DNA from: Rebecca billardiae RCC1528
Lineage: Eukaryota > Protista > Haptophyta
Length of the DNA stretch: 64,000 bases
Assembly: GCA_965240325.2 (NCBI GenBank)
Contig: OZ251228.1
Location: forward strand, 1,612,001 to 1,676,000
Direction: 5' to 3'
Shown: positions 2,215 through 18,100 of the stretch, piece by piece
How positions within the stretch are numbered: position 1 is the first letter of the stretch
Layout of the letters: every line of letters starts with the position of its first letter
Made by a program: the position numbers and the translations under genes
Notes under the pieces: model-generated
Told to the model about the DNA's origin: nothing
Seen by the model: the letters and a program-made list of their open reading frames with translations, nothing else
The model's database searches: none

Positions 2215-5200
2215 TCACATGAGACCGCCGAGGAAGTTGCTCGCCGCCTGCGCGTTGGCACGCGCGTTCTCCACGGCCCGATGGTCGTTGCCCGAGTCCC
2301 ATCCCGAGTCGAGGCTCTGCTGGTTTGGCCACGACGAGACGGGCGGCGGCAGCGGCTCCGGCCGCGGTGGCGGCGGCGGTGGCGCGTTCTGTGCGCGCGA
2401 GGGCGAGGGAGTCGGGCGCGCGGCCGCCGGTGTTGAGTGGCGCGGCGCGCGGCCTCCCGCGCGCGCCGCCGCGGCTGCGCACCTGCCAGTTCCGCTTGAA
2501 CCAGCGCAGCATCTCCTCGAGGCTCGAGTGCACGACGCTGCGGAGCCGGAAGCCCGCCGGCTTGACCGAGACAAGCTCGTGCTTCACAGACTTGGAGGGC
2601 ACGTATGAGAGGACGAGGTGGCCGGGCGCCTTGTCGCACACGGACACGCGGTACGGGATCGAGGCGGGCGCCTCGGCCTTCTCGCGCCGCAGCAGCGAGT
2701 CCACCTCCGCCTGCTTCTTGTGCAGGAACTTGCGGTGCGTCATCGCCTCGGAGACGAGGTCGGAGATGGGCGCGGCGTATCTCGCGTGGATCTCGTCAAG
2801 CGCCTCAAAGGCCTCGCCCTCCGAGCGGCCCTCGGCGTAGCCAACGACGAGGGTGCGCCCGAGCTGCTCGGCGGACGGCTTGTCGCGCTCGAGCACGTCC
2901 ACGTGCAGGATCGTCTCCGGCGCCCACACCCACGACATGGTGAGGTGGTCGTCCCCCTTGGAGGAGGGCCTGAACAAGACATCTCCGGGCGTGCCTGCGC
3001 GCGGCGGACGGTCGGGCGCGGCGCGGGGCGCGGCGCGGGGCGCGCGTGCAAGTGGGCGCCGGCCGCGGCCCCGCGCGCGCACGGCGCGGCGCCGCCGCTC
3101 CGCGCGCGCACCCTGCTTGAGGATCTCGCACGCGCGCTCGTACAGCACGTTCTGAAACAGCGGGTGCGTGATGCGCCGCTTCAGCACCTGCGCGGACCAA
3201 AAACAAACAAGCACGCGCGGCGGAAAAAAAAACGGGGGCGGAAAAAAAAACGGGGGCGCCGGGCGCGCCGGCGCGCGCGGCGCGGAGGCGGAGCGCAGGT
3301 GTCGGGTCGGGCGCGGCAGCACGGGCAGGCAGGCGAGCGGCGGCGTGGACGCGGTACGGTGCGGTGCGTCGGCGCGCGCGGCGCGGCGTGCCTTTGGCGC
3401 AGCGGGCCGCTCGTCGTGCGCGCGCTGCTCGGCAACCGAGCGGAAATCTGCCCTCGCGAGATCGCCGCCTCGGCACGAGATTGTGACCTCGCACTTGGCC
3501 TGGTCGATGTCGTTTGGGCTGAGCACGACGCAGTGGAAGGTGGCGCCCACCGCCACGGGCATCTCCGACTGCTCGTACCCGTCCGACATCTCGTTCGACA
3601 TGAGCTCCGCCGGCAGGAACGCCTGCATGCCGTTGTCGAGCGCGCACCACATTCCGCTCACGCGCTCGCGCGTGCCCTGGCGCACCGCGCGCGCGACCAG
3701 AAGGCCACCTGCGCGCGCGCCGCGCGCGGCGAGCGGCGCCGCGGCCGTTCGGGTGAGAGCGCGGTAGCAGCGCAGCAGCGCAGCAGCGCACCGCGCTCGC
3801 GCTCGCCCGCTCCCCTCGGCGCGCGCCCGCGCTCGCCCGCGCTCGCCCGCCCCCGTCCCCCGCGCGCGTGGCGCTGCGCGCGCGCGCGCACTCGTGAGCG
3901 TGCGCGTTGTCTCGCCGGTCAGCTGCTCGAAGAGGGGCTCGGCGCGGAGCAGCTCGACCTGGGGCGCGTCGGAGCCGTCGAGCGGCGGCGGCGCGTCCGG
4001 CGAGGGCGCGACGAGCACCTCGCGCGGGTCGGCGTACGGCTCGATCAGCGCCGCCTGCATCGCGGTCAGCTGCAGCTCGAGTTCGCGTGGCTCTGCCACC
4101 GTCTGCACTCCACCGATCTCCTCGCCGCGCAGGTGTCGCGCGTACTCGACGACCTCGAGCTGGTTGAGCTCGTCGCGCTTGCCGATGGTGGCGGAGACGG
4201 CCTCGTTGATCGCGCCCTCCTCCTCCGGCAGGTCCTCCTCGTCGTCGTCCGCCGCCGCCTGCACGCACAGCTGCCGGGCGAACTCGTAGTGCTCGGGGTG
4301 CACGCGCGTCATCTCGAGGGTTGGGACCACCTCCGCGTCGTCGTCGAGCGGCGCGAAGAAAATGAAGGGGGCGAGGTTGCGGTAGACGGTGGGCCCGAGG
4401 AGGCCGCGCTCGAGCAGGCCGGCGCGGCTCGCCACGTCGTTCCCCAGCTGCGCGAGCGTCACCAGCTGCTCGAACAGCCGCGCCGCCTTGCGCGGGCCCA
4501 GCCCCGGGACGAACTGCAGAACGTGCCGCGCGTGCGAGCCGTGCGCGACGACCCACGGAAGGTTCACGCCGAGCCGCGCGACGGTGGAGACGAGGCGCGC
4601 GCGCAGCGCGGCGACGAGCGCCTCGCGCGGCACGGCGGACTGCAGCGGGTGCAGGTGCAGCGCCGCGAGCGCCTCGCCGCCCGCCCCCGCCACGTGCGCC
4701 AGCTCGAGCACGAAGTCCTGCGCGGCGCGGCCGAGCGAGACGGCGCGCCACAGCAGCGCGTGCCGGTCGCCGAGCTCGCGCGCCGCTTCCTCGGACGCGG
4801 CGTAGAGCGCGGGCACCTCCTCCGAGCCGTAGACGACGCGGAAGGGCGCGGCGGCGTTCATCTCCGCCAGCGACATCGGGAACGCCGCCGGCCCGTCCAC
4901 GTCGTGGAACGGCTCCCTGAACACGGCGTCGCGGCCGAGCGGTCCTTCGACCATCTCTGTGCGGCCGAGCGGGTGCGCGCACGTGTTGTACGCGGTGAAG
5001 CCGTCGTCGCCGTGGACGGCGCGCACGGCGAGCGCGCGCGAGAGGTGCTCGAGCTCGGTGCGCAGCTCGCGGCAGCGCAGGTGCGACGCGCCGATCACGA
5101 CGAACGACGGCGAGCCGAGCTCCGTCGGCCCGAGGAAGTCTGCCAGCTTGCTCAGCTCGTCCGCCTTGCGGCTCCGGTCGACCTCCGACCGAGTACGCCA

Positions 5201-10133: not shown

Positions 10134-12566
10134 CTACGACGCCGGCAGCACCACGCCCCCGCCCGCGCGCACGTACGGCCCCGTGCGGATCCACGCGTTG
10201 ATCGCGTACTTGTGCCCGAGCTGCGGCGGATCCGCCGCGTGCATCGTGCGCTCGTCCTCAAGCCCGTGCTCGTCGTGGTTGTCGAAGACGAGCGCCGCGT
10301 TCCTCTCAGGCCGGATCGACAGCCCGAGCCGAGGGAAGCGCGTGTGCCCGCCCGGGTCGGCCGGGTCGAGAGAGTTGAGGTACAACAGGAAGGTGGTCAT
10401 GCGCTTGGCGCCTGCGAGCGCGCGCGGCACGGCGCGCGGCGGGAGCGGGGGGCGGCAGCGCGCACGGCACGAGCAAGGCGCGGCCGGGCAGCCGGCCAGG
10501 CAGTGGCGTCGGGCGATGAGCGCCCACGCCGCGCGAGCGCGCCCGCGATGCGACGCTCGCCCGCGCGCACGGCGCGCGCGCCGCCGCCTCGCGCGGCGCG
10601 GCGCGCACCGCTGAAGCGATTGGACAGGTCGCAGCTGTCGAGGTAATCCGCGTGCAGCTCGTGCATCTCCGTGGGCGCGTAGTGCACGGCGTTCAGGTTC
10701 TCGATGTGCCCCCTCGGCACGCGCGCCGCCTGCGCGATCAGCGCGTACACGCGCTGCACCATGGGCACCTCGCGCGGCAGATAGGCGACCGAGGAGTTTT
10801 GGAACGTGGCGCGGTGCGTGGACAGCGCGGGCGCGCGGTGCAGCAGCGGCTGGGCGATCGCGATGAGCGCGGCGGACTCGTCGTCGGTGAGGAAGTCGTG
10901 CAGCAGGCGTACGCGCGGCGTGCTCAGCACGTGCTCGACGCGCACGTGCCGCACGCCCACCCCGGCGCCCGGGACGGCAAGCCGCAGCACGTGCCGCGCC
11001 CCGCCAACCCAAGAGTCCACACGCGGCGTCATCGCATGGTGCCTGCGCCGCGCGCGAGCGCAAGCGCGCGCGGGCGTGGCAGGCGCGCAGGCGGGCGGGC
11101 GTGAGCGGGGGCATGCGCGCGCGGCGAGCGCGAGCTCGCGCGAGGGCGAGAGGGCGTGCGGCGACCATCCCATCGCCCTCCCACCCCCAGCCCTCCGCCC
11201 GCCCGCCCGCGCCCGCCGCTGCCGCCGGAGAATTGAATAAAGCTGAAGGCGCGTGCGGCGCCCATGCTGCCTGTGCGCACCTCTGCTGGCACGCGGTGAA
11301 GTGCGCCGGGCCGAACCCGCTGAGGAGCCGCCGGCGCCACAGCGCCGGGGGCTCGTCGGCGCGCCACGGGCCCCCGGCCATGCACAGGCTGCGCAGCGTC
11401 GTCTGTCCGCCGAGCGCCTCGAGCGGGGCCGTGCCTGGGACCGCCTGCGCGGGCGTGCGATCTGGGAACCGCCTCAGCAGGCGCAGCACCGACTCTGGCC
11501 GGTGCGCCGAGCACGTGTGGAAGCAGCGCTGCAGGGTCTCGACGGCCGCCTTGCCGCTGCAGTGGCCCGAGGCGTGCAGCGAGGCGCAGTCCGGCCGCTG
11601 GTCGACGAGCGGTACGCAGAGCGGCGTCACCGGCCGACCCGCCTCGCCGAGTAGCGAGCGCCACCGCTCGGCGAGCTGAGCGCTGCTCAACCTGCCGGCG
11701 CCAGCCGCTGCGTCCGAGCCCGGCTCGGCGGCCGCGCCTGCGGCGGTGGCGAGCGCGCCACTCGCCTGCGCGACGTCGGCCGCGCCATCGAGCGGCTGCG
11801 CGCCCTCTCCGCCGTCGCCGCTCTCGCGCACCCCATCCCCGCCACCGAGGCCCGCGGCGGCAGCCGCGAGCGGCCCTGAGCTCAGGATCGCTCCGCGCGC
11901 CTCCGACGGCGCAGCCGACGCGCCCTTGGCTTGCGGCGCGGCGCCAGACGGCTGCGCGGCGCTGGCGTTCACGAGGCGCATGGCGGCGAAGTAGCGCGCG
12001 CAGCTCGCGGCGCACTGCTGCTGCATGAACGCCATCGAGCGCTGGCACTCGCCGCTGAGCGCCCAATGGCGACAGTGCTTCTGCATGTCGCTGGCGCCGT
12101 AGCCGCACGTGGCGGCGCAGTGGATCTGCATGAACGGCACGCTCGCCTCGCAGTCGCCGTGCTGCTTCCACTCGGCGCACTGCTCGTCGGAGTGGGCTGG
12201 CGTCACGTTCAGCTCGCCCGAGAGCACCGACTGCTCAGACTGCTGCGCGGCAAACGAGCGCGATCGGAAGGACGGGCGCTCGTCGCCGTGCGACTTGCAG
12301 CTCTTGCGGCAGCTGTGCAGCATGTAGACGGGGTTGCGCACGCACTCGCCCTGCGTCGCCCAGAACAGGCAGTTCTCGTTCAGGTCGACCGCCTTGCCCG
12401 AGCCCAACGCGCCGCCCGCCACATGGATCAGCACTGCGATGAGCGCGCCGCTCGCCAAGCCGACGAGCGTCCAAAACTCCCAATCGCCGGCGCCCCGCGC
12501 GGGCCCGGCAGACGAGGAGCCCCCGCGCGCCGCGCGCACGCCCTTCTTCGACGAGCGGGTCGTCAT
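10134..12566 (-). CDS. Prolyl 4-hydroxylase alpha-like 2OG-Fe(II) dioxygenase with N-terminal TM anchor and 3-4 ShK domains
   Basis: TM segment FWTLVGLASGALIAVLI. ShK repeats such as DLNENCLFWATQGECVRNPVYMLHSCRKSC. P4H motifs PRVRLLHDFLTDDE, HADY (HxD), RMTTFLLYLN, GGHTRFP, TMHAADP and KYAINAWIR. Introns about 11044-11280 and 10412-10608. Confidence 0.88.
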   Translation of the reverse strand: MTTRSSKKGVRAARGGSSSAGPARGAGDWEFWTLVGLASGALIAVLIHVAGGALGSGKAVDLNENCLFWATQGECVRNPVYMLHSCRKSCKSHGDERPSFRSRSFAAQQSEQSVLSGELNVTPAHSDEQCAEWKQHGDCEASVPFMQIHCAATCGYGASDMQKHCRHWALSGECQRSMAFMQQQCAASCARYFAAMRLVNASAAQPSGAAPQAKGASAAPSEARGAILSSGPLAAAAAGLGGGDGVRESGDGGEGAQPLDGAADVAQASGALATAAGAAAEPGSDAAAGAGRLSSAQLAERWRSLLGEAGRPVTPLCVPLVDQRPDCASLHASGHCSGKAAVETLQRCFHTCSAHRPESVLRLLRRFPDRTPAQAVPGTAPLEALGGQTTLRSLCMAGGPWRADEPPALWRRRLLSGFGPAHFTACQQRCAQAAWAPHAPSALFNSPAAAAGAGGRAEGWGWEGDGMVAARPLALARARARRARMPPLTPARLRACHARARLRSRAAQAPCDDAACGLLGWRGAARAAACRPGRRGGRAARARRARAEHAARTPAARLPHRRRVRRAHRDRPAAAAPRARAVHAPRHVPKLLGRLSAARGAHGAARVRADRAGGARAEGAHREPERRALRAHGDARAARGLPRQLRPVQSLQRCAPRRARRRRARRARGRASHRGRARAAWALIARRHCLAGCPAAPCSCRARCRPPLPPRAVPRALAGAKRMTTFLLYLNSLDPADPGGHTRFPRLGLSIRPERNAALVFDNHDEHGLEDERTMHAADPPQLGHKYAINAWIRTGPYVRAGGGVVLPAS

Positions 12567-12747
12567 CCACCCGCCGTCCGCCTGCGTGGGCGCCCGCTCA
12601 CGACGATGGCGACCCCGCCGTGGTCGGCACGCAGGTCCTACAAGTGGTTCCGGTGCAAGACAAGACGCAAGCTGAGCTTTCGGTTGCGACTTGCGCCCTC
12701 GCGAGCGGCGGCATCGCGGCGGCCGGCGGCACCGCGCTGGCGCGAAC

Positions 12748-15151
12748 ATGTTCCGATGCTGCATGGGTGGCGACAAGGGCGGCGCGGCGGGTGGCGAGGA
12801 GGCGAATCGTGACACCATCGACGAGGCGAATGCCGCCCCAGCACAGCCCACGGAGCGCGCGGAGGCGCCGACGGCGGGCTCGCCGCGCAGCGCGCCGCGC
12901 GCTCCGCCCGGCTCCGGGCTGCTCAAGCGCGCGGACATTCGGTCGTTGCCCCTCGCGGAGCAGGAGCGCGTGTGCGACGCGCTGGACGAGATGGTGCGCA
13001 CCGGCGAGTACTTCCGCCTCGCCTCGTACCACGGCTGGCCGAACGAGTTCTGCGCGCACAACGAGGAGCACTTCCCGGTGTGGCACAGAGGGTACCTCGT
13101 CGAGTTCGAGCGTGCGCTGAGCCAGGCGGACCGCTCGCTCGGCCGCGACGGCTCGATCGGGCTGCCGTACTGGGACGGCGGCCAGCCCGTCGTGAACGGC
13201 GAGACGCTCCCGGCCGTCCTGCGCCGCCGCTGGGGCACGCTGCCGAGCCAGCTCCGAGATCAGATCGCGCGCCACCCGCAGGCCGCGGGCGCGGCGCGGC
13301 TGCTCGAGACGGGGTACGCGCTCCACGGGGAGGCGCGCGTGCGGCAGGGCATCGCGCCGATGGCGCAGCGCTACGCGCTCTGCCTGCTCGAGGCCGAGCA
13401 CTGGCGGCACGCGTCCAACCGCTTCTCCGGCCGCGCGGGCGGCGTGTCGCTTGAGGACCCTCACAACACCGGGCACGTAGCGCTTGGCTTCCCGATGACG
13501 TCGGTGGGCTTCGCGGCGTTCCACCCGATCTTCTTCATGCACCACTGCCAGGTGGACCGCGTGTACGAGTCCTACCTCCGGACCGAGCCGGACTCGGCGG
13601 CGGAGTTTGCCGCGACGCAGGCGATGCTGCAGGAGCAGAACGCGGAGGGCAACCGGTTCGTCGCGCCGCTCGAGCCGTTCTCGCATCCGCGCACCGGCGC
13701 GCAGCTAGTGCCTGCGGACTGCTTCGACGCGCGCGCGCTCGGCTTCGAGTACGACGCGCTGCTCGCGCCGCCGCCCGTCGAGCGCCAGCTCCGCGAGCGC
13801 CCCACCCTTGTGCTGCTGCCCGCAGTCACCAAGGGCATGACGAATTTCCGCTCGTTCCAGCTGCATGCGTTTGTGGTGCCCGCGGCCGAGGCTGCTGCCT
13901 TCCACCCGCCAGCCGCGGCGGAGGGCGTCGAGCTGTGGGCGCAGCACCCGGCGTACGGCGGGACGGGCGCGCACTTTGGCGGCAAGGGTGCGCGCGCGCC
14001 GCCATCCCCCCCCCCGCGCGCGCGCCGCGCCGTCGTGCGCCCAACCGCCCGAAGGGGGCGGCGCGCAGCGCGCACGCGCGCTGCTCATCAGCGCACGCGC
14101 GCGCGCGCTCACGCCAACCCGCGCGCGCGCGCCGGCGGTGCTCGCGCACGCAGGCGCCGAGTGCGCCAACTGCCTCGACGCCAAGCCCTTTGACATCACA
14201 ATCGACGTGAGCGACGCCGTGCGCCGCGCGCGCACGCCGCGCTCCGAGCTCGTCGCCGTCGTGCTCGCGCTCGGCGAGGATGGCGAGCTGTCGCGCGCCG
14301 AGCACGTCGGCCTGCCCGCGCCGCGACTCGTCGGACCCACGTTCGAGTCGGAGGCGCCGATCGCGCTGGGCGCGCACGGCGCGGACGTCGCCGCGGCGCA
14401 GCGGCTGCTGCACAAGCTTGGCTTTGCCGAGGTGTGCGGGCGCGTCGACGGCGAGCTCGGCCCGCACATGGCTGCCGCGCTCAAGCTGTACCAGCGCTCG
14501 CACGGGCTCGAGCGCTCGGGCGCGCTCGACGCGGCGGTGCGCGCGTCGCTGGTGCGCACGCGCTTCGACCTGCACAGCGAGCTGCCGGGGGAGGACGACA
14601 CGCCGCGGCGCACGCCGCAGGGCGAGCTGCTGAGCGAGGCCGCGCGCGTGCCCTACCACGTCGGCGTCAGCCCGGGGTACCTCCCGCGCGCGCGCGCACT
14701 CGAGGAGATCACGTCCGCATTCGCGCAGTGGGCGGACGCGGGCGGCGTGAAGTTTGTGCGCGTGGCGGAGCGCGCGGACGCGCTCATCGTCGTCGAGTGG
14801 TCCGACAACACGCGGCAGAACGAGCTGCGCTTCGACGGCCCGGGCGGCGCGCTCGCCATCGTCGACGTGCCCAGCGGCGCGCAGGCCGGGCCGCAGCCGG
14901 CCCCGTGGCACCTTACGCTCGACGCGAGCGAGCGCTGGACGCTGCAGGGCGAGCCAGAGCCTCGGCCCGGCTCCTTCGTGCTGCTGCCGGTCGTCCTGCA
15001 CGAGGTGGGGCACCTGCTCGGGCTGGCGCACTCGGCGGCGACGGCGGACGAGGTGATGAGCCCGTACTATGAGCCGGGACGCGTCAGGCTCAGCGCGCGA
15101 GACCGCGCGCGTGCGCACGCTCTTCAGTCCCCGCAGCGCTTCAGCCGGTGA
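12748..15151 (+). CDS. Tyrosinase (type-3 copper) + tyrosinase C-terminal domain + PG-binding-like domain + matrixin (M10) metallopeptidase fusion; 2 exons
   Basis: CuA: SYHG, CAH, FPVWHR; LPYWD; CuB: PHNTGH, HPIFFMHHCQVDR; CANC. PG_binding-like DVAAAQRLL..DGELGPHMAAALKLYQRSHGL..G.LD. M10 motifs FDGPGG, HEVGHLLGLAHS and Met-turn VMSPYY. GT-AG intron 13988-14153 joins the two reading frames. Confidence 0.88.
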
Positions 15152-15181
15152 CTCGGGTGAGACAGAGACGGGTGAATCCGT

Positions 15182-18100
15182 TAGGGGGGCCCACTGGCCG
15201 CTGTGAGGCTGGCGCGCCACTGTTAGAGGCCTGTCTACGAGGGTCAGACGCTCAAACTTGGACTGGTTTATGACTCTAGGTACCTAATGGGACCAATCAG
15301 ACACGTTGGTGCAGTCATCAGAGGATTGTGCTCGGCCGCGCGCCAAGCGCGCGGCCGCGCCGGCCCCACGCGACCCGTTCGGCAGCAGTCGGTGGGGGCA
15401 GCGGCGGCGCGAGACTTCGCCGCGGCGGCCGCCTCGGCGCTCTCACGGCCGGATCCGGCGTCAGAGAGTCGTCAGCCACTCGCCCGTGCGCGCATCCTGC
15501 AGATCGTACACAGGTACCAGCGCGTCCGCGTCATCGAGCGCGGTGCGGACGACCGCCACCTCGTTGCCGCTGAGCAGCTTGCTGAGCTTGCCGTAGCTCC
15601 AGACGCGACACGCCTCGTCGTCGATCTCAGTCTCCAGCAGCGCGCGCACGAACAGCCCCTTCTTGGCCGTCGACGGTGGCGGCGCCTTCGACAAGATCGC
15701 CTCGCGCGGGACGACGCGCGGCTCGGCACCGACGGGCTCCACGACGTACTTGTCGGCGCTCTGGTCGACGCTCTTGATGACGCCCGAGAAGGTGTCCGTG
15801 TCCTCCGAGTCGGACGACACGGGCAGCTGCACGATGACGCGCGTGCCCACCTCGAGCGGAGAGTCGATCAGCGCCTGCACCTTGTCGTCCCACGCGATGA
15901 GCGCCTCGCCGTCGGCCACCTTGAGGAGCTGGTCGAGCATCGCCATGGTCTCAGCGTCGTTCGAGAGGTCGGAGAGCGGCTGCCAGGAGGGCGGCCAGTG
16001 CTTGAGCTCGGGCCGGCCGTCGTCGTCCTCGATCGCGTAGCCGTCCTCGTCCACCTCGTCGGTTGGCTCCCAGCCCACGAGCACCTCCGGCCCCGTGGCG
16101 CCCATGCGGAAGTCGTGCAGGCCCGTGATGTCCCAGTACTGCCTCCGCTTCGGCTTCGGCGCCCGCCGCCGCTTGGCCGCGGGCTCGCCAGTGCCGCGCC
16201 GGCGCGGAGCGCCCTTCTGCGAGCGCGCGATGGGGTGTGGGCGCCGGGCGCGAGCAGCGATCAGACACGCGAGGCACGCGCGCTACGGCGAGGGCACGCG
16301 CCGGCAAAGCTGAGCGGCGCGGCGCGCACCCGGCCCGCCGACTCCATCAGCTGGGCGTACGGCACGTCCTTGGCCGCCTCGCCATACTTGCCCACGACGA
16401 GGTCGGCGAGCATCCCCATCAGCTTCTCCTTCTTGCCCGACCTCGACTTGGGCACGACCTTGGACTTGTCGACGAAGCGGAAGACGTCAATCTGGTCGAG
16501 GAGCGCCGGCGCCGACAGCGCGCTCTCCGCCGGAGCGAGCTGCGACCAGCGCGTCACGCGCGACGGCGCCACCTCCTCGACGATCCGATTCTTGTGCTGC
16601 TCCTCCTTGTCGCGCTTGGCCGTCAGCTTGGCCTTGCGCTCGAGCTTCTTCGGCCGCGAGAGCGCCGCGTGGCGCGCGAGGCGGCCGATGAGCGTGCTGC
16701 CGTTGACGGCGTCATCCTGCCGCTTGAACTTGCGGGAAACCTCCAAGGCGAGCTTCCTCTCCTCCGGGCACAGGCCAATGAGGAAGGTGCCCGTCTTGTT
16801 CGCCTTCGCGCGCACCTTGCTCGCGAGGTTGTGCGCGTTCGTCGTGCGCCCCGTGCGCTGCGCCTCGCCGAGCATCCCTGAGCGAGGCGCGCGGGCCCGG
16901 ACACGCAGGGCGTCAGCTGCGCGCGCGGCGAGAGTCGCACGCGCAGCGCGTGCGCACTGGCCGCGCACTCACCTGCGATGCGCTCACACGGCGCACCGGT
17001 CGTGTGCGCGTTGCGCAGCGCGAGCGCGCGCTGCTCGTCCAGGTCGCGCATCGAGCCGAGCAGGTCGGCGAGCGGATCGTCGGGCGTCGCGAGCTCGAGC
17101 TGCCAGCGCACGGTGAAGTGGTTGAAGCGAGTGGCGAACGCGGCGCAAAAGACTTCGATGAAGCGCTTCGTGAGATTGCACTGCTCCCAGTGCACGCCGT
17201 GCGCGCCGCGCCGCTCAGCTTCGCAGCGCTCACGGAGCAGCTCGTCCACCATCGCCATCCGCTTGCGTCCCGTGAAGAGATCCACCTCGCGCCGCATGAA
17301 GCGGGTGGCGTCCACGCCGATGGACTTGGCCACGTCGTACACGCGCGTGCAGACGTCCTGCAGCTCGGTGGCCACGGTGCCCTCGCTCTCCACGCGGTGC
17401 AGCTCGGCGAGCACCTGCGTGTAGAAGAACGGGCCGCAGATGCCCTTGGCGTAGATGGCCGCCTGGTACTCGGGCCGCGTCAGGCAGTTGTACGAGTAGC
17501 GGTGCGAGGCCGACAGCTTCTCGCCGCATGCCAGCTCGTCTTCGGTGAAGAGGATCCAGAGGTACATGAGCCGGCACGCCGCCGTGCAGTTCTGCGGGGC
17601 AGCGCCGATCGCGGGGCCAGCCGCGCGCGCGTGCGTCCGCTCAGCCGCGCTCTTGCGGCGCGGCGCGGCGTGGCGCGGCGCGGCGCGGCGCGCACCAGAG
17701 TGGTCGCGCCACCACGCGCGCCGCACGTGCGCCCAAAGCCGGTGACGAGGCCGCGGATCTGCTCCGCGGTCCAGCGGATGCCGTCATCGCGCTCGTTGTT
17801 GTAGTCAATGACGAACTTGATGAACCGCTCGAAGAGGCTCCAGTCCTTCGTCGCGACGCGCGCAAACATCTTGGTGAGCGTGTGGATCAGGTGGTTGAGC
17901 GGCCGCGTGCGCAGCGAGTAGCCGCCGCTGTCCTTCTGCACCTTACCTGCGGGCCGAGGCGGGCCGAGACGCGGCGGGGCGGCGCGAGGCGGCGGGCCCG
18001 GGCAGAGCAGACCCGGGCGGGGCGGGGCGGGGCGGGACGCGGCGGGGCGCGCGCGCGAGGTGAGTGTGTGCTGCTGCGTCCGCGCTGAGAGCGGCGCACG

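Follow-up and report, generated by a model that had tools for sequence, protein, structure and literature searches.

The window, by which we mean the whole 64,000-nucleotide stretch of Rebecca billardiae RCC1528 DNA that was analyzed, contains at positions 12748-15151 (+ strand, as are all features below) what reads as one two-exon gene encoding a single 745-residue protein. In this protein, a type-3 copper tyrosinase with a predicted cap domain is followed by a unit that resembles a matrix metalloproteinase (MMP) zymogen. Release of the cap by the fused protease, that is, self-activation, is a plausible candidate mechanism that fits the data. In fungi, plants, and molluscs, latent tyrosinases and polyphenol oxidases (PPOs) become active when a C-terminal cap is removed or displaced; we know of no protease that has been established as the activator of the fungal latent tyrosinases. 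A natural fusion of a capped tyrosinase with a protease offers an activation candidate that is directly testable within one recombinant protein, and, if the mechanism is true, this would be the first identified protease that activates a capped tyrosinase.

Exon 1 (12748..13987) begins at the first ATG of its open frame and encodes residues 1-413 together with the first base of Gly414. After the start codon, it covers an acidic/Pro-rich N-terminal region, the tyrosinase core, a linker, and the first two thirds of the cap. The intron (13988..14153) is 166 nt long, is bounded by GT..AG, lies in phase 1, and is approximately 80% GC with (GC)n runs. Exon 2 (14154..15151) encodes the end of the cap with its CANC motif, the MMP pro-domain, the switch region, and the M10 catalytic domain, and ends with a TGA stop at 15149-15151. 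The spliced coding sequence of 2238 nt is translated into 745 residues with this single terminal TGA. At the junction, exon 1 ends with ...HFGGK, the split codon gives Gly, and exon 2 starts with AECANC; the resulting FGGKGAECANC aligned without gaps with FGGKGADCANC of the intronless homologue P0002. P0002 and P0003 share 51-55% identity with the window protein, and each is encoded on a genomic contig by one uninterrupted ORF. Furthermore, a paralogue in the same genome (C5) crosses the same junction in one unbroken ORF (L011:3664-4983) that spans LGFEYD, FGGKATECAGC, and the pro-domain, into HEV. The splice could be fixed to the residue because P0002, P0003, and the C5 ORF are colinear and gap-free; the placement is thus supported by homologues, with homology as its whole basis. 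All modules were colinear in one chain, and both tyrosinase loci of the 72-Mb genome have a same-strand M10 domain downstream. The initial annotation had joined tyrosinase and protease in frame across one intron, and the intronless homologues agree with that junction.

The tyrosinase central domain (PF00264) was located at 13006..13578 (residues 87-277), and a Pfam search of window:12748-13986 gave 104.2 bits against a cut-off of 22.6 (E 1.7e-29). The CuA site (13027-13095) comprises H95, a thioether-type C102-x-H104 motif, and H113, and the CuB site (13462-13548) comprises H239, H243, and the H265/H266 pair. In the 22 relatives that were aligned, the copper His residues are invariant or at least 90% conserved, and the C-x-H of the thioether-type motif (C102-A-H104 in the window protein) is kept in 21. 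The six copper His residues and the CxH motif of the initial annotation were thereby located, and so was its LGFEYD motif, at residues 331-336, where it is conserved in the family. Judged by these motifs, the N-terminal half belongs to the type-3 copper tyrosinases, specifically to the thioether-bearing type of fungi and mollusc hemocyanins, and oxidase activity is predicted for it.

The LGFEYD motif (13738-13755) marks the end of the core and, together with the core-cap linker ALLAPPPVERQLRERP, occupies 13738..13803, a candidate processing site. The family linker follows the motif LPPxPxxxQ[LM]RExP and has no textbook MMP motif with Pro at P3. In the structural model of P0003, the linker-equivalent RQLR (303-306) has pLDDT<50, and the sole other internal segment of this kind is 585-591, in the S-loop region. 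The linker is thus predicted to be flexible, as modeled for P0003, yet it is conserved in sequence; cleavage would occur here. The cap (shield) domain follows at 13804..14350 (residues 353-479) and is split by the intron. It contains F410 in FGGKG (13975-13987 + 14154-14155), a segment conserved in the family as FGG[KR], and C417-x-x-C420 (C417-A-N-C420; 14162-14173), whose CxxC is conserved likewise, so that the fungal-style C-terminal domain with CANC that had been annotated is present and shared by the family. The cap is kept in every family member. When the cap domain alone was searched by sequence against the PDB, no meaningful match was obtained, and it is recognizable by fold only; in the relatives, Pfam Tyrosinase_C gave sub-threshold matches (E 0.06-0.11).

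The whole-protein fold was read from P0003 as a proxy (54% identical), the window's own model being that of the exon-2 part (window:14345-15148). The P0003 model (pLDDT 85.7, pTM 0.84) superposed with its core and cap (25-432) as a rigid body on the Octopus hemocyanin functional unit (FU) 1js8 (Z 33.8, rmsd 3.1, 336 of 382 residues), on latent abPPO4 (4oua_B, Z 27.9), and on the Aspergillus oryzae pro-tyrosinase (6jub/3w6w, Z about 26.5). Active cap-less tyrosinases matched it over the core only (12-300). In the model, a beta-sandwich cap with the conserved Phe and CxxC is predicted to cover the active site in the manner of latent pro-tyrosinases, and the capped oxidase is probably inactive. 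The latent fungal enzymes abPPO4 (4OUA, Agaricus bisporus) and MelB (3W6W, A. oryzae) resemble the window protein in the thioether-type CuA and the exposed linker. They are also alike in the YG/YxY end-of-core motif and in a beta-sandwich cap where a Phe precedes the CxxC by a few residues (PMC4157443), and in the rigid superposition of core and cap onto the P0003 model (Z 26-28). F410, a candidate placeholder residue for the active site, lies 7 residues upstream of C417, and its counterpart in abPPO4 is Phe454 relative to Cys462 (PMC4157443). However, abPPO4 and MelB have no protease domain, whereas the window protein carries one in the same chain, and its cap shows no detectable sequence similarity to theirs.

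The C-terminal half begins with a three-helix domain of PG_binding_1 type at 14378..14551 (Pfam E 1e-10), followed by the segment TRFDLHS at 14558..14578 and the Peptidase_M10 catalytic domain at 14648..15115 (E 4.5e-23); in the search of window:14156-15148, the latter scored 82.3 bits against a cut-off of 24. The catalytic domain includes HEVGHLLGLAHS (residues 696-707, 14999-15034), with H696, E697, H700, and H706, and the Met-turn VMSPYY (15053-15070). Both had been annotated as matrixin features and both are present; HExxHxxGxxH and the Met-turn are invariant in the 22 relatives. The PG_binding_1 domain (PF01471) had been described as PG-binding-like. The Pfam match bears out the domain, but we read it as an MMP pro-domain: it aligns colinearly with pro-MMPs, and this eukaryotic protein has no signal peptide; a role in peptidoglycan binding was rejected on the same two grounds. 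The pro-domain was colinear with that of pro-MMP-9, and the family profile matched pro-MMP-3, pro-MMP-1, and pro-MMP-7 across both the pro-domain and the catalytic domain. Structural matches to pro-MMP-10 and pro-MMP-9 had TMt 0.76-0.78 at rmsd 3.5-4, and the pro-domain plus catalytic domain of the window's own model fitted pro-MMP-9 and pro-MMP-2 loosely (rmsd 7.6-8.5 A over 205-217 residues). A search of a protein-cluster atlas returned generic PG_binding+M10 clusters only, with a score of about 0.75.

The window's own model of the MMP unit (pLDDT 87.7) matched karilysin (Z 19.5, rmsd 2.8, 164/166) and human MMP-1, -8, and -12 (Z about 19, rmsd 2.2-2.3); the catalytic-domain matches to karilysin, MMP-1, and MMP-12 spanned Z 18.9-19.5 and rmsd 2.2-2.8 A over 154-164 residues. 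Residues 73-264 of this model aligned with residues 21-199 of pro-karilysin (4r3v). In the karilysin alignment, the positions that we take, from MMP numbering (MMP-3, MMP-8), to be the structural-zinc ligands His, Asp, His, and His read R, N, I, and T. The loss annotated as AHA replaced by AIV is consequently wider than first described, with all four ligand positions changed. The Ca-site residues of the S-loop (FDGPGG...LDxxERW) are kept. A PRCGxPD cysteine switch was not found, and no family member has a Cys at the switch position. TRFDLHS aligned with PRCGVPD of pro-MMP-9, with F551 opposite the switch Cys (RTRF vs TPRC), in agreement with the replacement that had been annotated. In the family, this segment reads R-[FMNYHK]-D, and R550 and D552 are at least 90% conserved; the R-F-D segment is of low confidence in the window MMP model (pLDDT <50, model residues 77-80). 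D552 is a candidate aspartate switch that may bind the zinc. Karilysin likewise lacks a Cys switch, and latency by an Asp switch has been established for it and for astacins (PMC9629494). With the M10A MMPs and karilysin, the window unit shares a Pfam M10 match above threshold, the pro-domain fold, HExxHxxGxxH, the Met-turn, and the S-loop Ca-site residues. Unlike MMPs, it has R, N, I, and T at the structural-zinc positions, has no Cys switch, signal peptide, or hemopexin domain, and is fused behind a tyrosinase. From its motifs, the C-terminal half is assigned as an MMP zymogen-like unit with an intact HExxHxxGxxH/Met-turn center and without a Cys switch or a structural zinc site. A matrixin that naturally lacks both is relevant to MMP latency and stability.

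The N-terminus MFRCCMGG (12748..12771) is a candidate S-acylation site at Cys4 and Cys5. MFRCC aligned with MLCCC of P0002 and MGNWC of P0003; starts among the relatives include MLCCC, MGNWCSS, MGNNICG, MGAGASS, and MGAAASV, and other relatives carry C2 domains. The S-acylation suggested in the initial annotation is strengthened by the orthologue N-termini MLCCC and MGNWCSS, acylation itself being a prediction. If translation began at Met6 instead, the N-terminus would read MGGDKG. The window protein has neither a hydrophobic N-terminus nor a TM segment (maximum Kyte-Doolittle value 0.09 over 12 residues, first 60), consistent with the earlier reading that a signal peptide is absent, and a hydropathy scan, made with no dedicated predictor, found no signal peptide or TM segment in any family member. 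Instead of a signal peptide, the family members have acylation motifs, C2 domains, or EF-hands. Therefore, the protein is probably intracellular and membrane-anchored through acylation.

At least 20 proteins combine PF00264, PF01471, and PF00413; their sources are Gonium, Volvox, Edaphochlamys, C. schloesseri, Ostreobium, Durusdinium, and metagenomes (volvocine green algae, Ostreobium, and Symbiodiniaceae). Complete or at least 90% conservation was seen in this family for the copper His residues, CxH, FGG[KR], CxxC, HExxHxxGxxH, and the Met-turn. Separate trees of the tyrosinase-plus-cap half and the pro-MMP half gave the same supported clades; the clade of the window protein, P0002, and P0003 had SH-aLRT 100 over the whole length and 99 / 99 for the two halves. 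Sequence comparison thus shows that, across at least 20 algal relatives, the two halves have been inherited together as a unit. The volvocine proteins (TYR-PG-ZnMc-EFh; Volvox carteri VOLCADRAFT_121539 and Gonium GPECTOR_11g263) have the same module order as the window protein and share with it the FGG[KR]/CxxC cap, the loss of the Cys switch, and the invariant catalytic residues. They differ in having a pair of EF-hands at the C-terminal end and no N-terminal Cys cluster, form a separate clade, and are ~39-43% identical to P0002 and P0003, the nearest relatives of the window protein. The C5 paralogue (C2-C2-tyrosinase-MMP) has the same fusion, the single-ORF junction, and an intact HExxH; it differs in its intron positions and in its N-terminus, where two C2 domains take the place of the acylation motif. 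In the half from cap to MMP, 345 of its residues align with the window protein at 31% identity, and it groups with the C2-bearing and dinoflagellate members, not with the window gene. P0014 has the same fusion plus a haem peroxidase domain (PF00141). Two relatives are protease-free: the MMETSP transcript P0006 consists of C2, tyrosinase, and cap only, with cap and CxxC kept, and C. eustigma P0027 is tyrosinase only. Therefore, cap handling does not universally depend on a fused protease.

The architecture, which the initial annotation took to be novel, is a conserved algal family already present, unnamed, in databases. Its novelty is weakened both by the at least 20 database proteins that share it and by the Fig. 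1a legend of Llorente et al. 2016 (PMC4707469), which lists the same domains for tyrosinase-domain proteins; to judge from that legend, the architecture was presumably drawn for a green-algal protein. Our literature search for the tyrosinase-MMP fusion, by locus tags, domain names, and algae, found the domains listed in PMC4707469 only, and no paper on the fusion. Green algae were earlier surveyed as lacking bona fide PPOs (PMC3472199), and a passage of PMC4707469 reports the same of stramenopile and haptophyte algae besides green algae. An intracellular phenoloxidase response, probably linked to Ca2+, would follow from the fusion for haptophytes, green algae, and coral-symbiont dinoflagellates.

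We propose, with about an even chance of being right, an acyl-anchored, doubly latent tyrosinase-proMMP in which a triggered protease cuts the core-cap linker and unleashes the oxidase. The protein would be made doubly latent, the conserved Asp of the R-x-D segment possibly serving as an aspartate switch, and a trigger would release the protease. The likeliest trigger would be a rise in Ca2+ at the membrane, proposed because the paralogue has C2 domains and the volvocine orthologues have EF-hands. The protease would then cut the exposed, conserved linker (...Q-[L/M]RE..., directly after the Q), in cis or in trans, and removal of the cap would unleash o-quinone production for cross-linking or defence. 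Cap release in cis would fit because the fusion is conserved, the active sites are invariant, the state is predicted to be capped, and the linker is flexible yet conserved. Points against the proposal are the protease-free relatives, the missing Pro at P3 in the linker, the loose fit of the window's own MMP model to pro-MMP-9 and pro-MMP-2, and the low confidence of its R-F-D segment. A more specific and rather doubtful form of this proposal is a one-polypeptide phenoloxidase triggered by damage: a cytosolic zymogen, tethered to the membrane by acyl groups or C2 domains, would sense Ca2+ via C2 domains, EF-hands, or the retained S-loop Ca site, and the Ca2+ would free an Asp-switch MMP that cuts the protein's own cap.

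Among the alternatives, a bifunctional enzyme is unlikely but deserves the most weight. Here, both activities would act on a common target (cell covering, scale, wound-plug material, or the contents of damaged cells), the protease trimming it and the tyrosinase oxidizing Tyr or small phenols to cross-link it, and the cap would be opened or removed otherwise. Such an enzyme predicts conservation of the fusion equally well, the haem peroxidase of P0014 fits an oxidative cross-linking toolkit, and both the protease-free P0006, with its retained cap and CxxC, and the linker without a canonical MMP site are consistent with it. However, an extracellular matrix target would need unconventional release, as no member has a signal peptide; something would still have to activate a capped tyrosinase, and the protease in the same chain is the closest candidate; and the linker between core and cap combines flexibility with sequence conservation. 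The reading of the chain as two neighboring genes (a tyrosinase, then an MMP) falsely joined, or as a kept intron that leaves a 481-residue tyrosinase without CxxC and protease, is improbable in the extreme. It draws on a prokaryote-style database gene call, P0001 (476 residues), that ends within the read-through intron. We rejected the two-gene reading, since the intron lies inside the cap domain, which therefore straddles it, the spliced product aligns with intronless homologues without gaps, the paralogue and P0002/P0003 carry the junction within one ORF, exon 2 lacks its own start codon and N-terminus as well as a gap large enough for a promoter, and the two halves co-evolve, as their matching trees indicate.

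Very improbable as well is that the copper unit is a permanently capped, hemocyanin-like module for O2 binding or sensing, or a CxxC copper-handling module, that regulates or accompanies the protease. Molluscan hemocyanin units (Octopus FU-g, 1JS8) were the best structural match of core and cap (Z 33-34) and also the top match of the copper unit, cap included, in the sequence search, and every member retains the cap. However, the genuine latent tyrosinases abPPO4 and A. oryzae MelB have the same fold and cap (Z 26-28), and it is not obvious what a unicellular alga would do with an O2 carrier. Furthermore, hemocyanins are secreted strings of 7-8 units that form oligomeric, extracellular, O2-carrying decamers, whereas the window protein has one unit plus a protease and no signal peptide. 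No tandem hemocyanin-type functional units were found in it; a single copper unit is followed by the protease, and the fold alone is in common. That the closest structural match is a hemocyanin, whose cap is permanent, is a point against the cap-removal model.

Arthropod prophenoloxidase is signal-peptide-less and latent, with a Phe placeholder, and damage or infection leads to its activation through limited proteolysis. If the damage-triggered form of the proposal is true, the family would be a functional equivalent of this cascade compressed into one chain. The similarity is one of outline only, an analogy and not membership: the arthropod PPOs are members of another type-3 copper family, and the enzymes that cut them are separate serine proteases of the clip-domain kind.

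The gene belongs to a 72-Mb eukaryotic assembly of 41 contigs, in which the window is C11:1612001-1676000. In the frame that begins at ATG 12748, Pfam recognised a Tyrosinase domain (E 1.7e-29), and in the one ending at TGA 15149-15151 it recognised PG_binding_1 (1e-10) and Peptidase_M10 (4.5e-23) domains. A canonical GT..AG intron at 13988-14153 on the + strand (166 nt, phase 1) joins both frames, and the spliced CDS of 2238 nt encodes 745 aa with one terminal stop. The fusion was tested by comparison with homologues and with the paralogue on contig C5 of the same genome, a comparative test that we grade as strong. In the alignment, exon 1 ended with ...HFGGK and exon 2 started with AECANC, with a split-codon Gly between them, and the spliced junction was gap-free against FGGKGADCANC of P0002. 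This protein (819 aa) and P0003 (669 aa) are the closest relatives, both 51-55% identical to the window protein, and each lies on a genomic contig as one continuous ORF, flanked by unrelated genes. The gap-free junction with these intronless relatives indicated that the cap, the C-terminal beta-sandwich shield over the tyrosinase core, itself spans the intron. As the cap straddles it, reading the locus as two genes is untenable. Only two tyrosinase loci were found in the genome, both with an M10 domain downstream on the same strand; at the C5 locus (L011, C5:1225000-1233000), an uninterrupted ORF (L011:3664-4983) extends from LGFEYD to the protease HEV and takes in FGGKATECAGC and the pro-domain. 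The in-frame fusion across one intron, proposed in the initial annotation, is thus borne out by the P0002 alignment and by the paralogue, in which a single ORF crosses the junction. Sequence comparison strongly supports a single fused gene from tyrosinase to M10 protease, and an artefact of the gene model is very improbable.

In this region of ~73% GC, long antisense or off-frame ORFs of up to 464 aa overlap the gene, such as 13826-15220 (-) and 12598-13686 (-), as does one of 1034 aa at 10134-13238; these are the usual by-product of such base composition, not genes. P0001 (476 aa), a gene call in the database, runs on through the intron of the window gene. The paralogue has introns at about L011:3437-3572 and 4933-5090, within the CuB region (between GFPMTSTR and YASFHPIFF) and within the HExxH motif (between LLHE and AGH), neither at the position of the window's cap intron. 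Together with the intronless P0002 and P0003, these differing sites indicated that intron positions are not common to the family.

The tyrosinase core contained the six copper His residues and the Cys-x-His thioether-type motif that had been annotated, and was closest to molluscan hemocyanin units and fungal tyrosinases in both sequence and fold. An AlphaFold model of P0003 (pLDDT 85.7, pTM 0.84) was used as a stand-in for the window protein. Residues 25-432 superposed rigidly on Octopus hemocyanin FU-g (Z 33.8 over 336 residues at rmsd 3.1 A), on latent abPPO4 (Z 27.9) and on A. oryzae pro-tyrosinase (Z about 26.5), whereas active cap-less tyrosinases matched over residues 12-300 only. Because core and cap fit the capped proteins as one rigid body and the cap-less forms match only the core, the tyrosinase is predicted to be in a shielded, latent state. 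In abPPO4, Phe454 of the cap is inserted as a substrate placeholder, CxxC lies eight residues beyond it, and the cap is severed by an unknown protease in an exposed loop that follows the YG motif (PMC4157443). The window protein has a conserved F410 seven residues upstream of C417-x-x-C420, which by analogy may be the equivalent of Phe454. The linker between core and cap carries the family-conserved motif LPPxPxxxQ[LM]RExP. In the P0003 model, pLDDT falls below 50 in just two internal stretches, the RQLR of this linker and 585-591 in the S-loop region. Flexible yet conserved, and with a hydrophobic possible P1', this linker is a reasonable candidate for the processing site.

As for the protease half, the annotated PG-binding-like domain was present, but sequence comparison identifies it as an MMP pro-domain: the family profile matched pro-MMP-3, pro-MMP-1 and pro-MMP-7 unbroken from pro-domain into catalytic domain. 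The window sequence was colinear with pro-MMP-9 and placed F551 at the switch cysteine, in agreement with the annotated replacement of the cysteine switch; no family member has Cys at this position, where R-x-D is conserved. An aspartate switch is used by the bacterial MMP karilysin and by astacins (PMC9629494). A model of the window's own MMP unit (pLDDT 87.7) aligned from R550 onward with pro-karilysin 4r3v from its pro-peptide (model residues 73-264 versus chain residues 21-199). The conserved R-x-D, the known aspartate switches and this alignment make D552 a candidate zinc latch. Caution is due on two counts: in the same model the R-x-D segment was low-confidence, and the rigid fit to pro-MMP-9 and pro-MMP-2 was loose (rmsd 7.6-8.5 A). 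A closer fit, to pro-MMP-10 and pro-MMP-9, came from the P0003 model (TMt 0.76-0.78, rmsd 3.5-4). The catalytic domain of the window protein fits the MMP fold well (Z 18.9-19.5, rmsd 2.2-2.8 A). Its structural-zinc site is lost, as suggested by AIV in place of AHA, but the change is wider, with all four positions replaced (R, N, I, T). The FDGPGG...LDxxExW residues, whose counterparts in MMP-3 make up an S-loop calcium site, are retained. The S-loop is full-length in the window protein (14858-14896, aa 649-661, VPSGAQAGPQPAP; aligned with karilysin FYPPPAGGNYAG), but it is about 12 residues shorter, by a deletion, in most relatives, P0002 and P0003 among them.

A profile search found at least 20 proteins combining PF00264, PF01471 and PF00413, and all fusion-family members are annotated as hypothetical. 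Fusions with C-terminal EF-hands came from Gonium pectorale, Volvox carteri, Edaphochlamys debaryana and Chlamydomonas schloesseri; the other named sources were Ostreobium quekettii, Durusdinium trenchii and Symbiodinium sp., and the remainder were metagenomic or Logan sequences. Some variants have N-terminal C2 domains. Among 22 members, the copper His, C-x-H, FGG[KR], CxxC, HExxHxxGxxH and the Met-turn were invariant or at least 90% conserved. Separate trees of the tyrosinase-cap and pro-MMP halves gave identical supported clades, with SH-aLRT 99 in each for {window, P0002, P0003}, indicating that the two halves have been inherited as a unit. An old duplication is suggested by the placement of the window gene and its C5 paralogue in different subfamilies. 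The initial annotation had not recognised this architecture, but these database proteins share it, and the Fig. 1a legend of Llorente et al. 2016, who argue that true PPOs are absent from green algae, lists TYR, PG, ZnMc and EFh for tyrosinase-domain proteins (PMC4707469); these domains were probably drawn for the green-algal protein. Our literature search found no paper studying or interpreting the tyrosinase-MMP fusion. The window protein therefore extends an as yet unnamed algal family by a new member, which combines the latent pro-tyrosinase and MMP zymogen kinds. P0014 (1211 aa, JGI metagenome) has a haem peroxidase domain (PF00141) joined to the tyrosinase-PG-M10 fusion, so that its domains predict three activities, oxidative or proteolytic, in a single polypeptide. 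P0006 (682 aa, an MMETSP transcript marked complete) has a C2 domain, tyrosinase and a cap with CSNC, and P0027 (Chlamydomonas eustigma, 488 aa) has tyrosinase; both are without the protease module, indicating that the protease is dispensable in some lineages or that the models are truncated.

In keeping with the annotated lack of a signal peptide, a hydropathy scan found no signal-peptide-like or transmembrane segment in the window protein or in any relative. The N-termini read MFRCC, MLCCC, MGNWCSS, MGNNICG, MGAGASS or MGAAASV, or else bear C2 domains, and volvocine members end in EF-hands. These sequence features point to a cytosolic, membrane-associated, Ca2+-responsive protein, whose N-terminus may be acylated and which may be under Ca2+ control.

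We prefer to read the protein as a doubly latent single-chain system, and give this an even chance. The fused protein would be made with tyrosinase and protease both latent; the protease would be freed, and would then uncap the tyrosinase, acting in cis or in trans. That the two enzymes instead act in parallel on a common substrate is rather unlikely, although the peroxidase-bearing P0014 and protease-less relatives such as P0006 favour it. That the copper half is a hemocyanin-like module for O2 or copper under a permanent cap is improbable.

The divergent upstream neighbour (10137-12569, -) codes for a protein with three ShK domains (E 2.5e-19) and, at its C-terminus, a prolyl-4-hydroxylase-like 2OG-Fe(II) oxygenase domain (E 9e-8). 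As the gap to the tyrosinase-MMP start is only about 180-600 bp, the two genes may share a promoter region. The neighbour of the C5 paralogue differs, being a tRNA isopentenyltransferase-like ORF.
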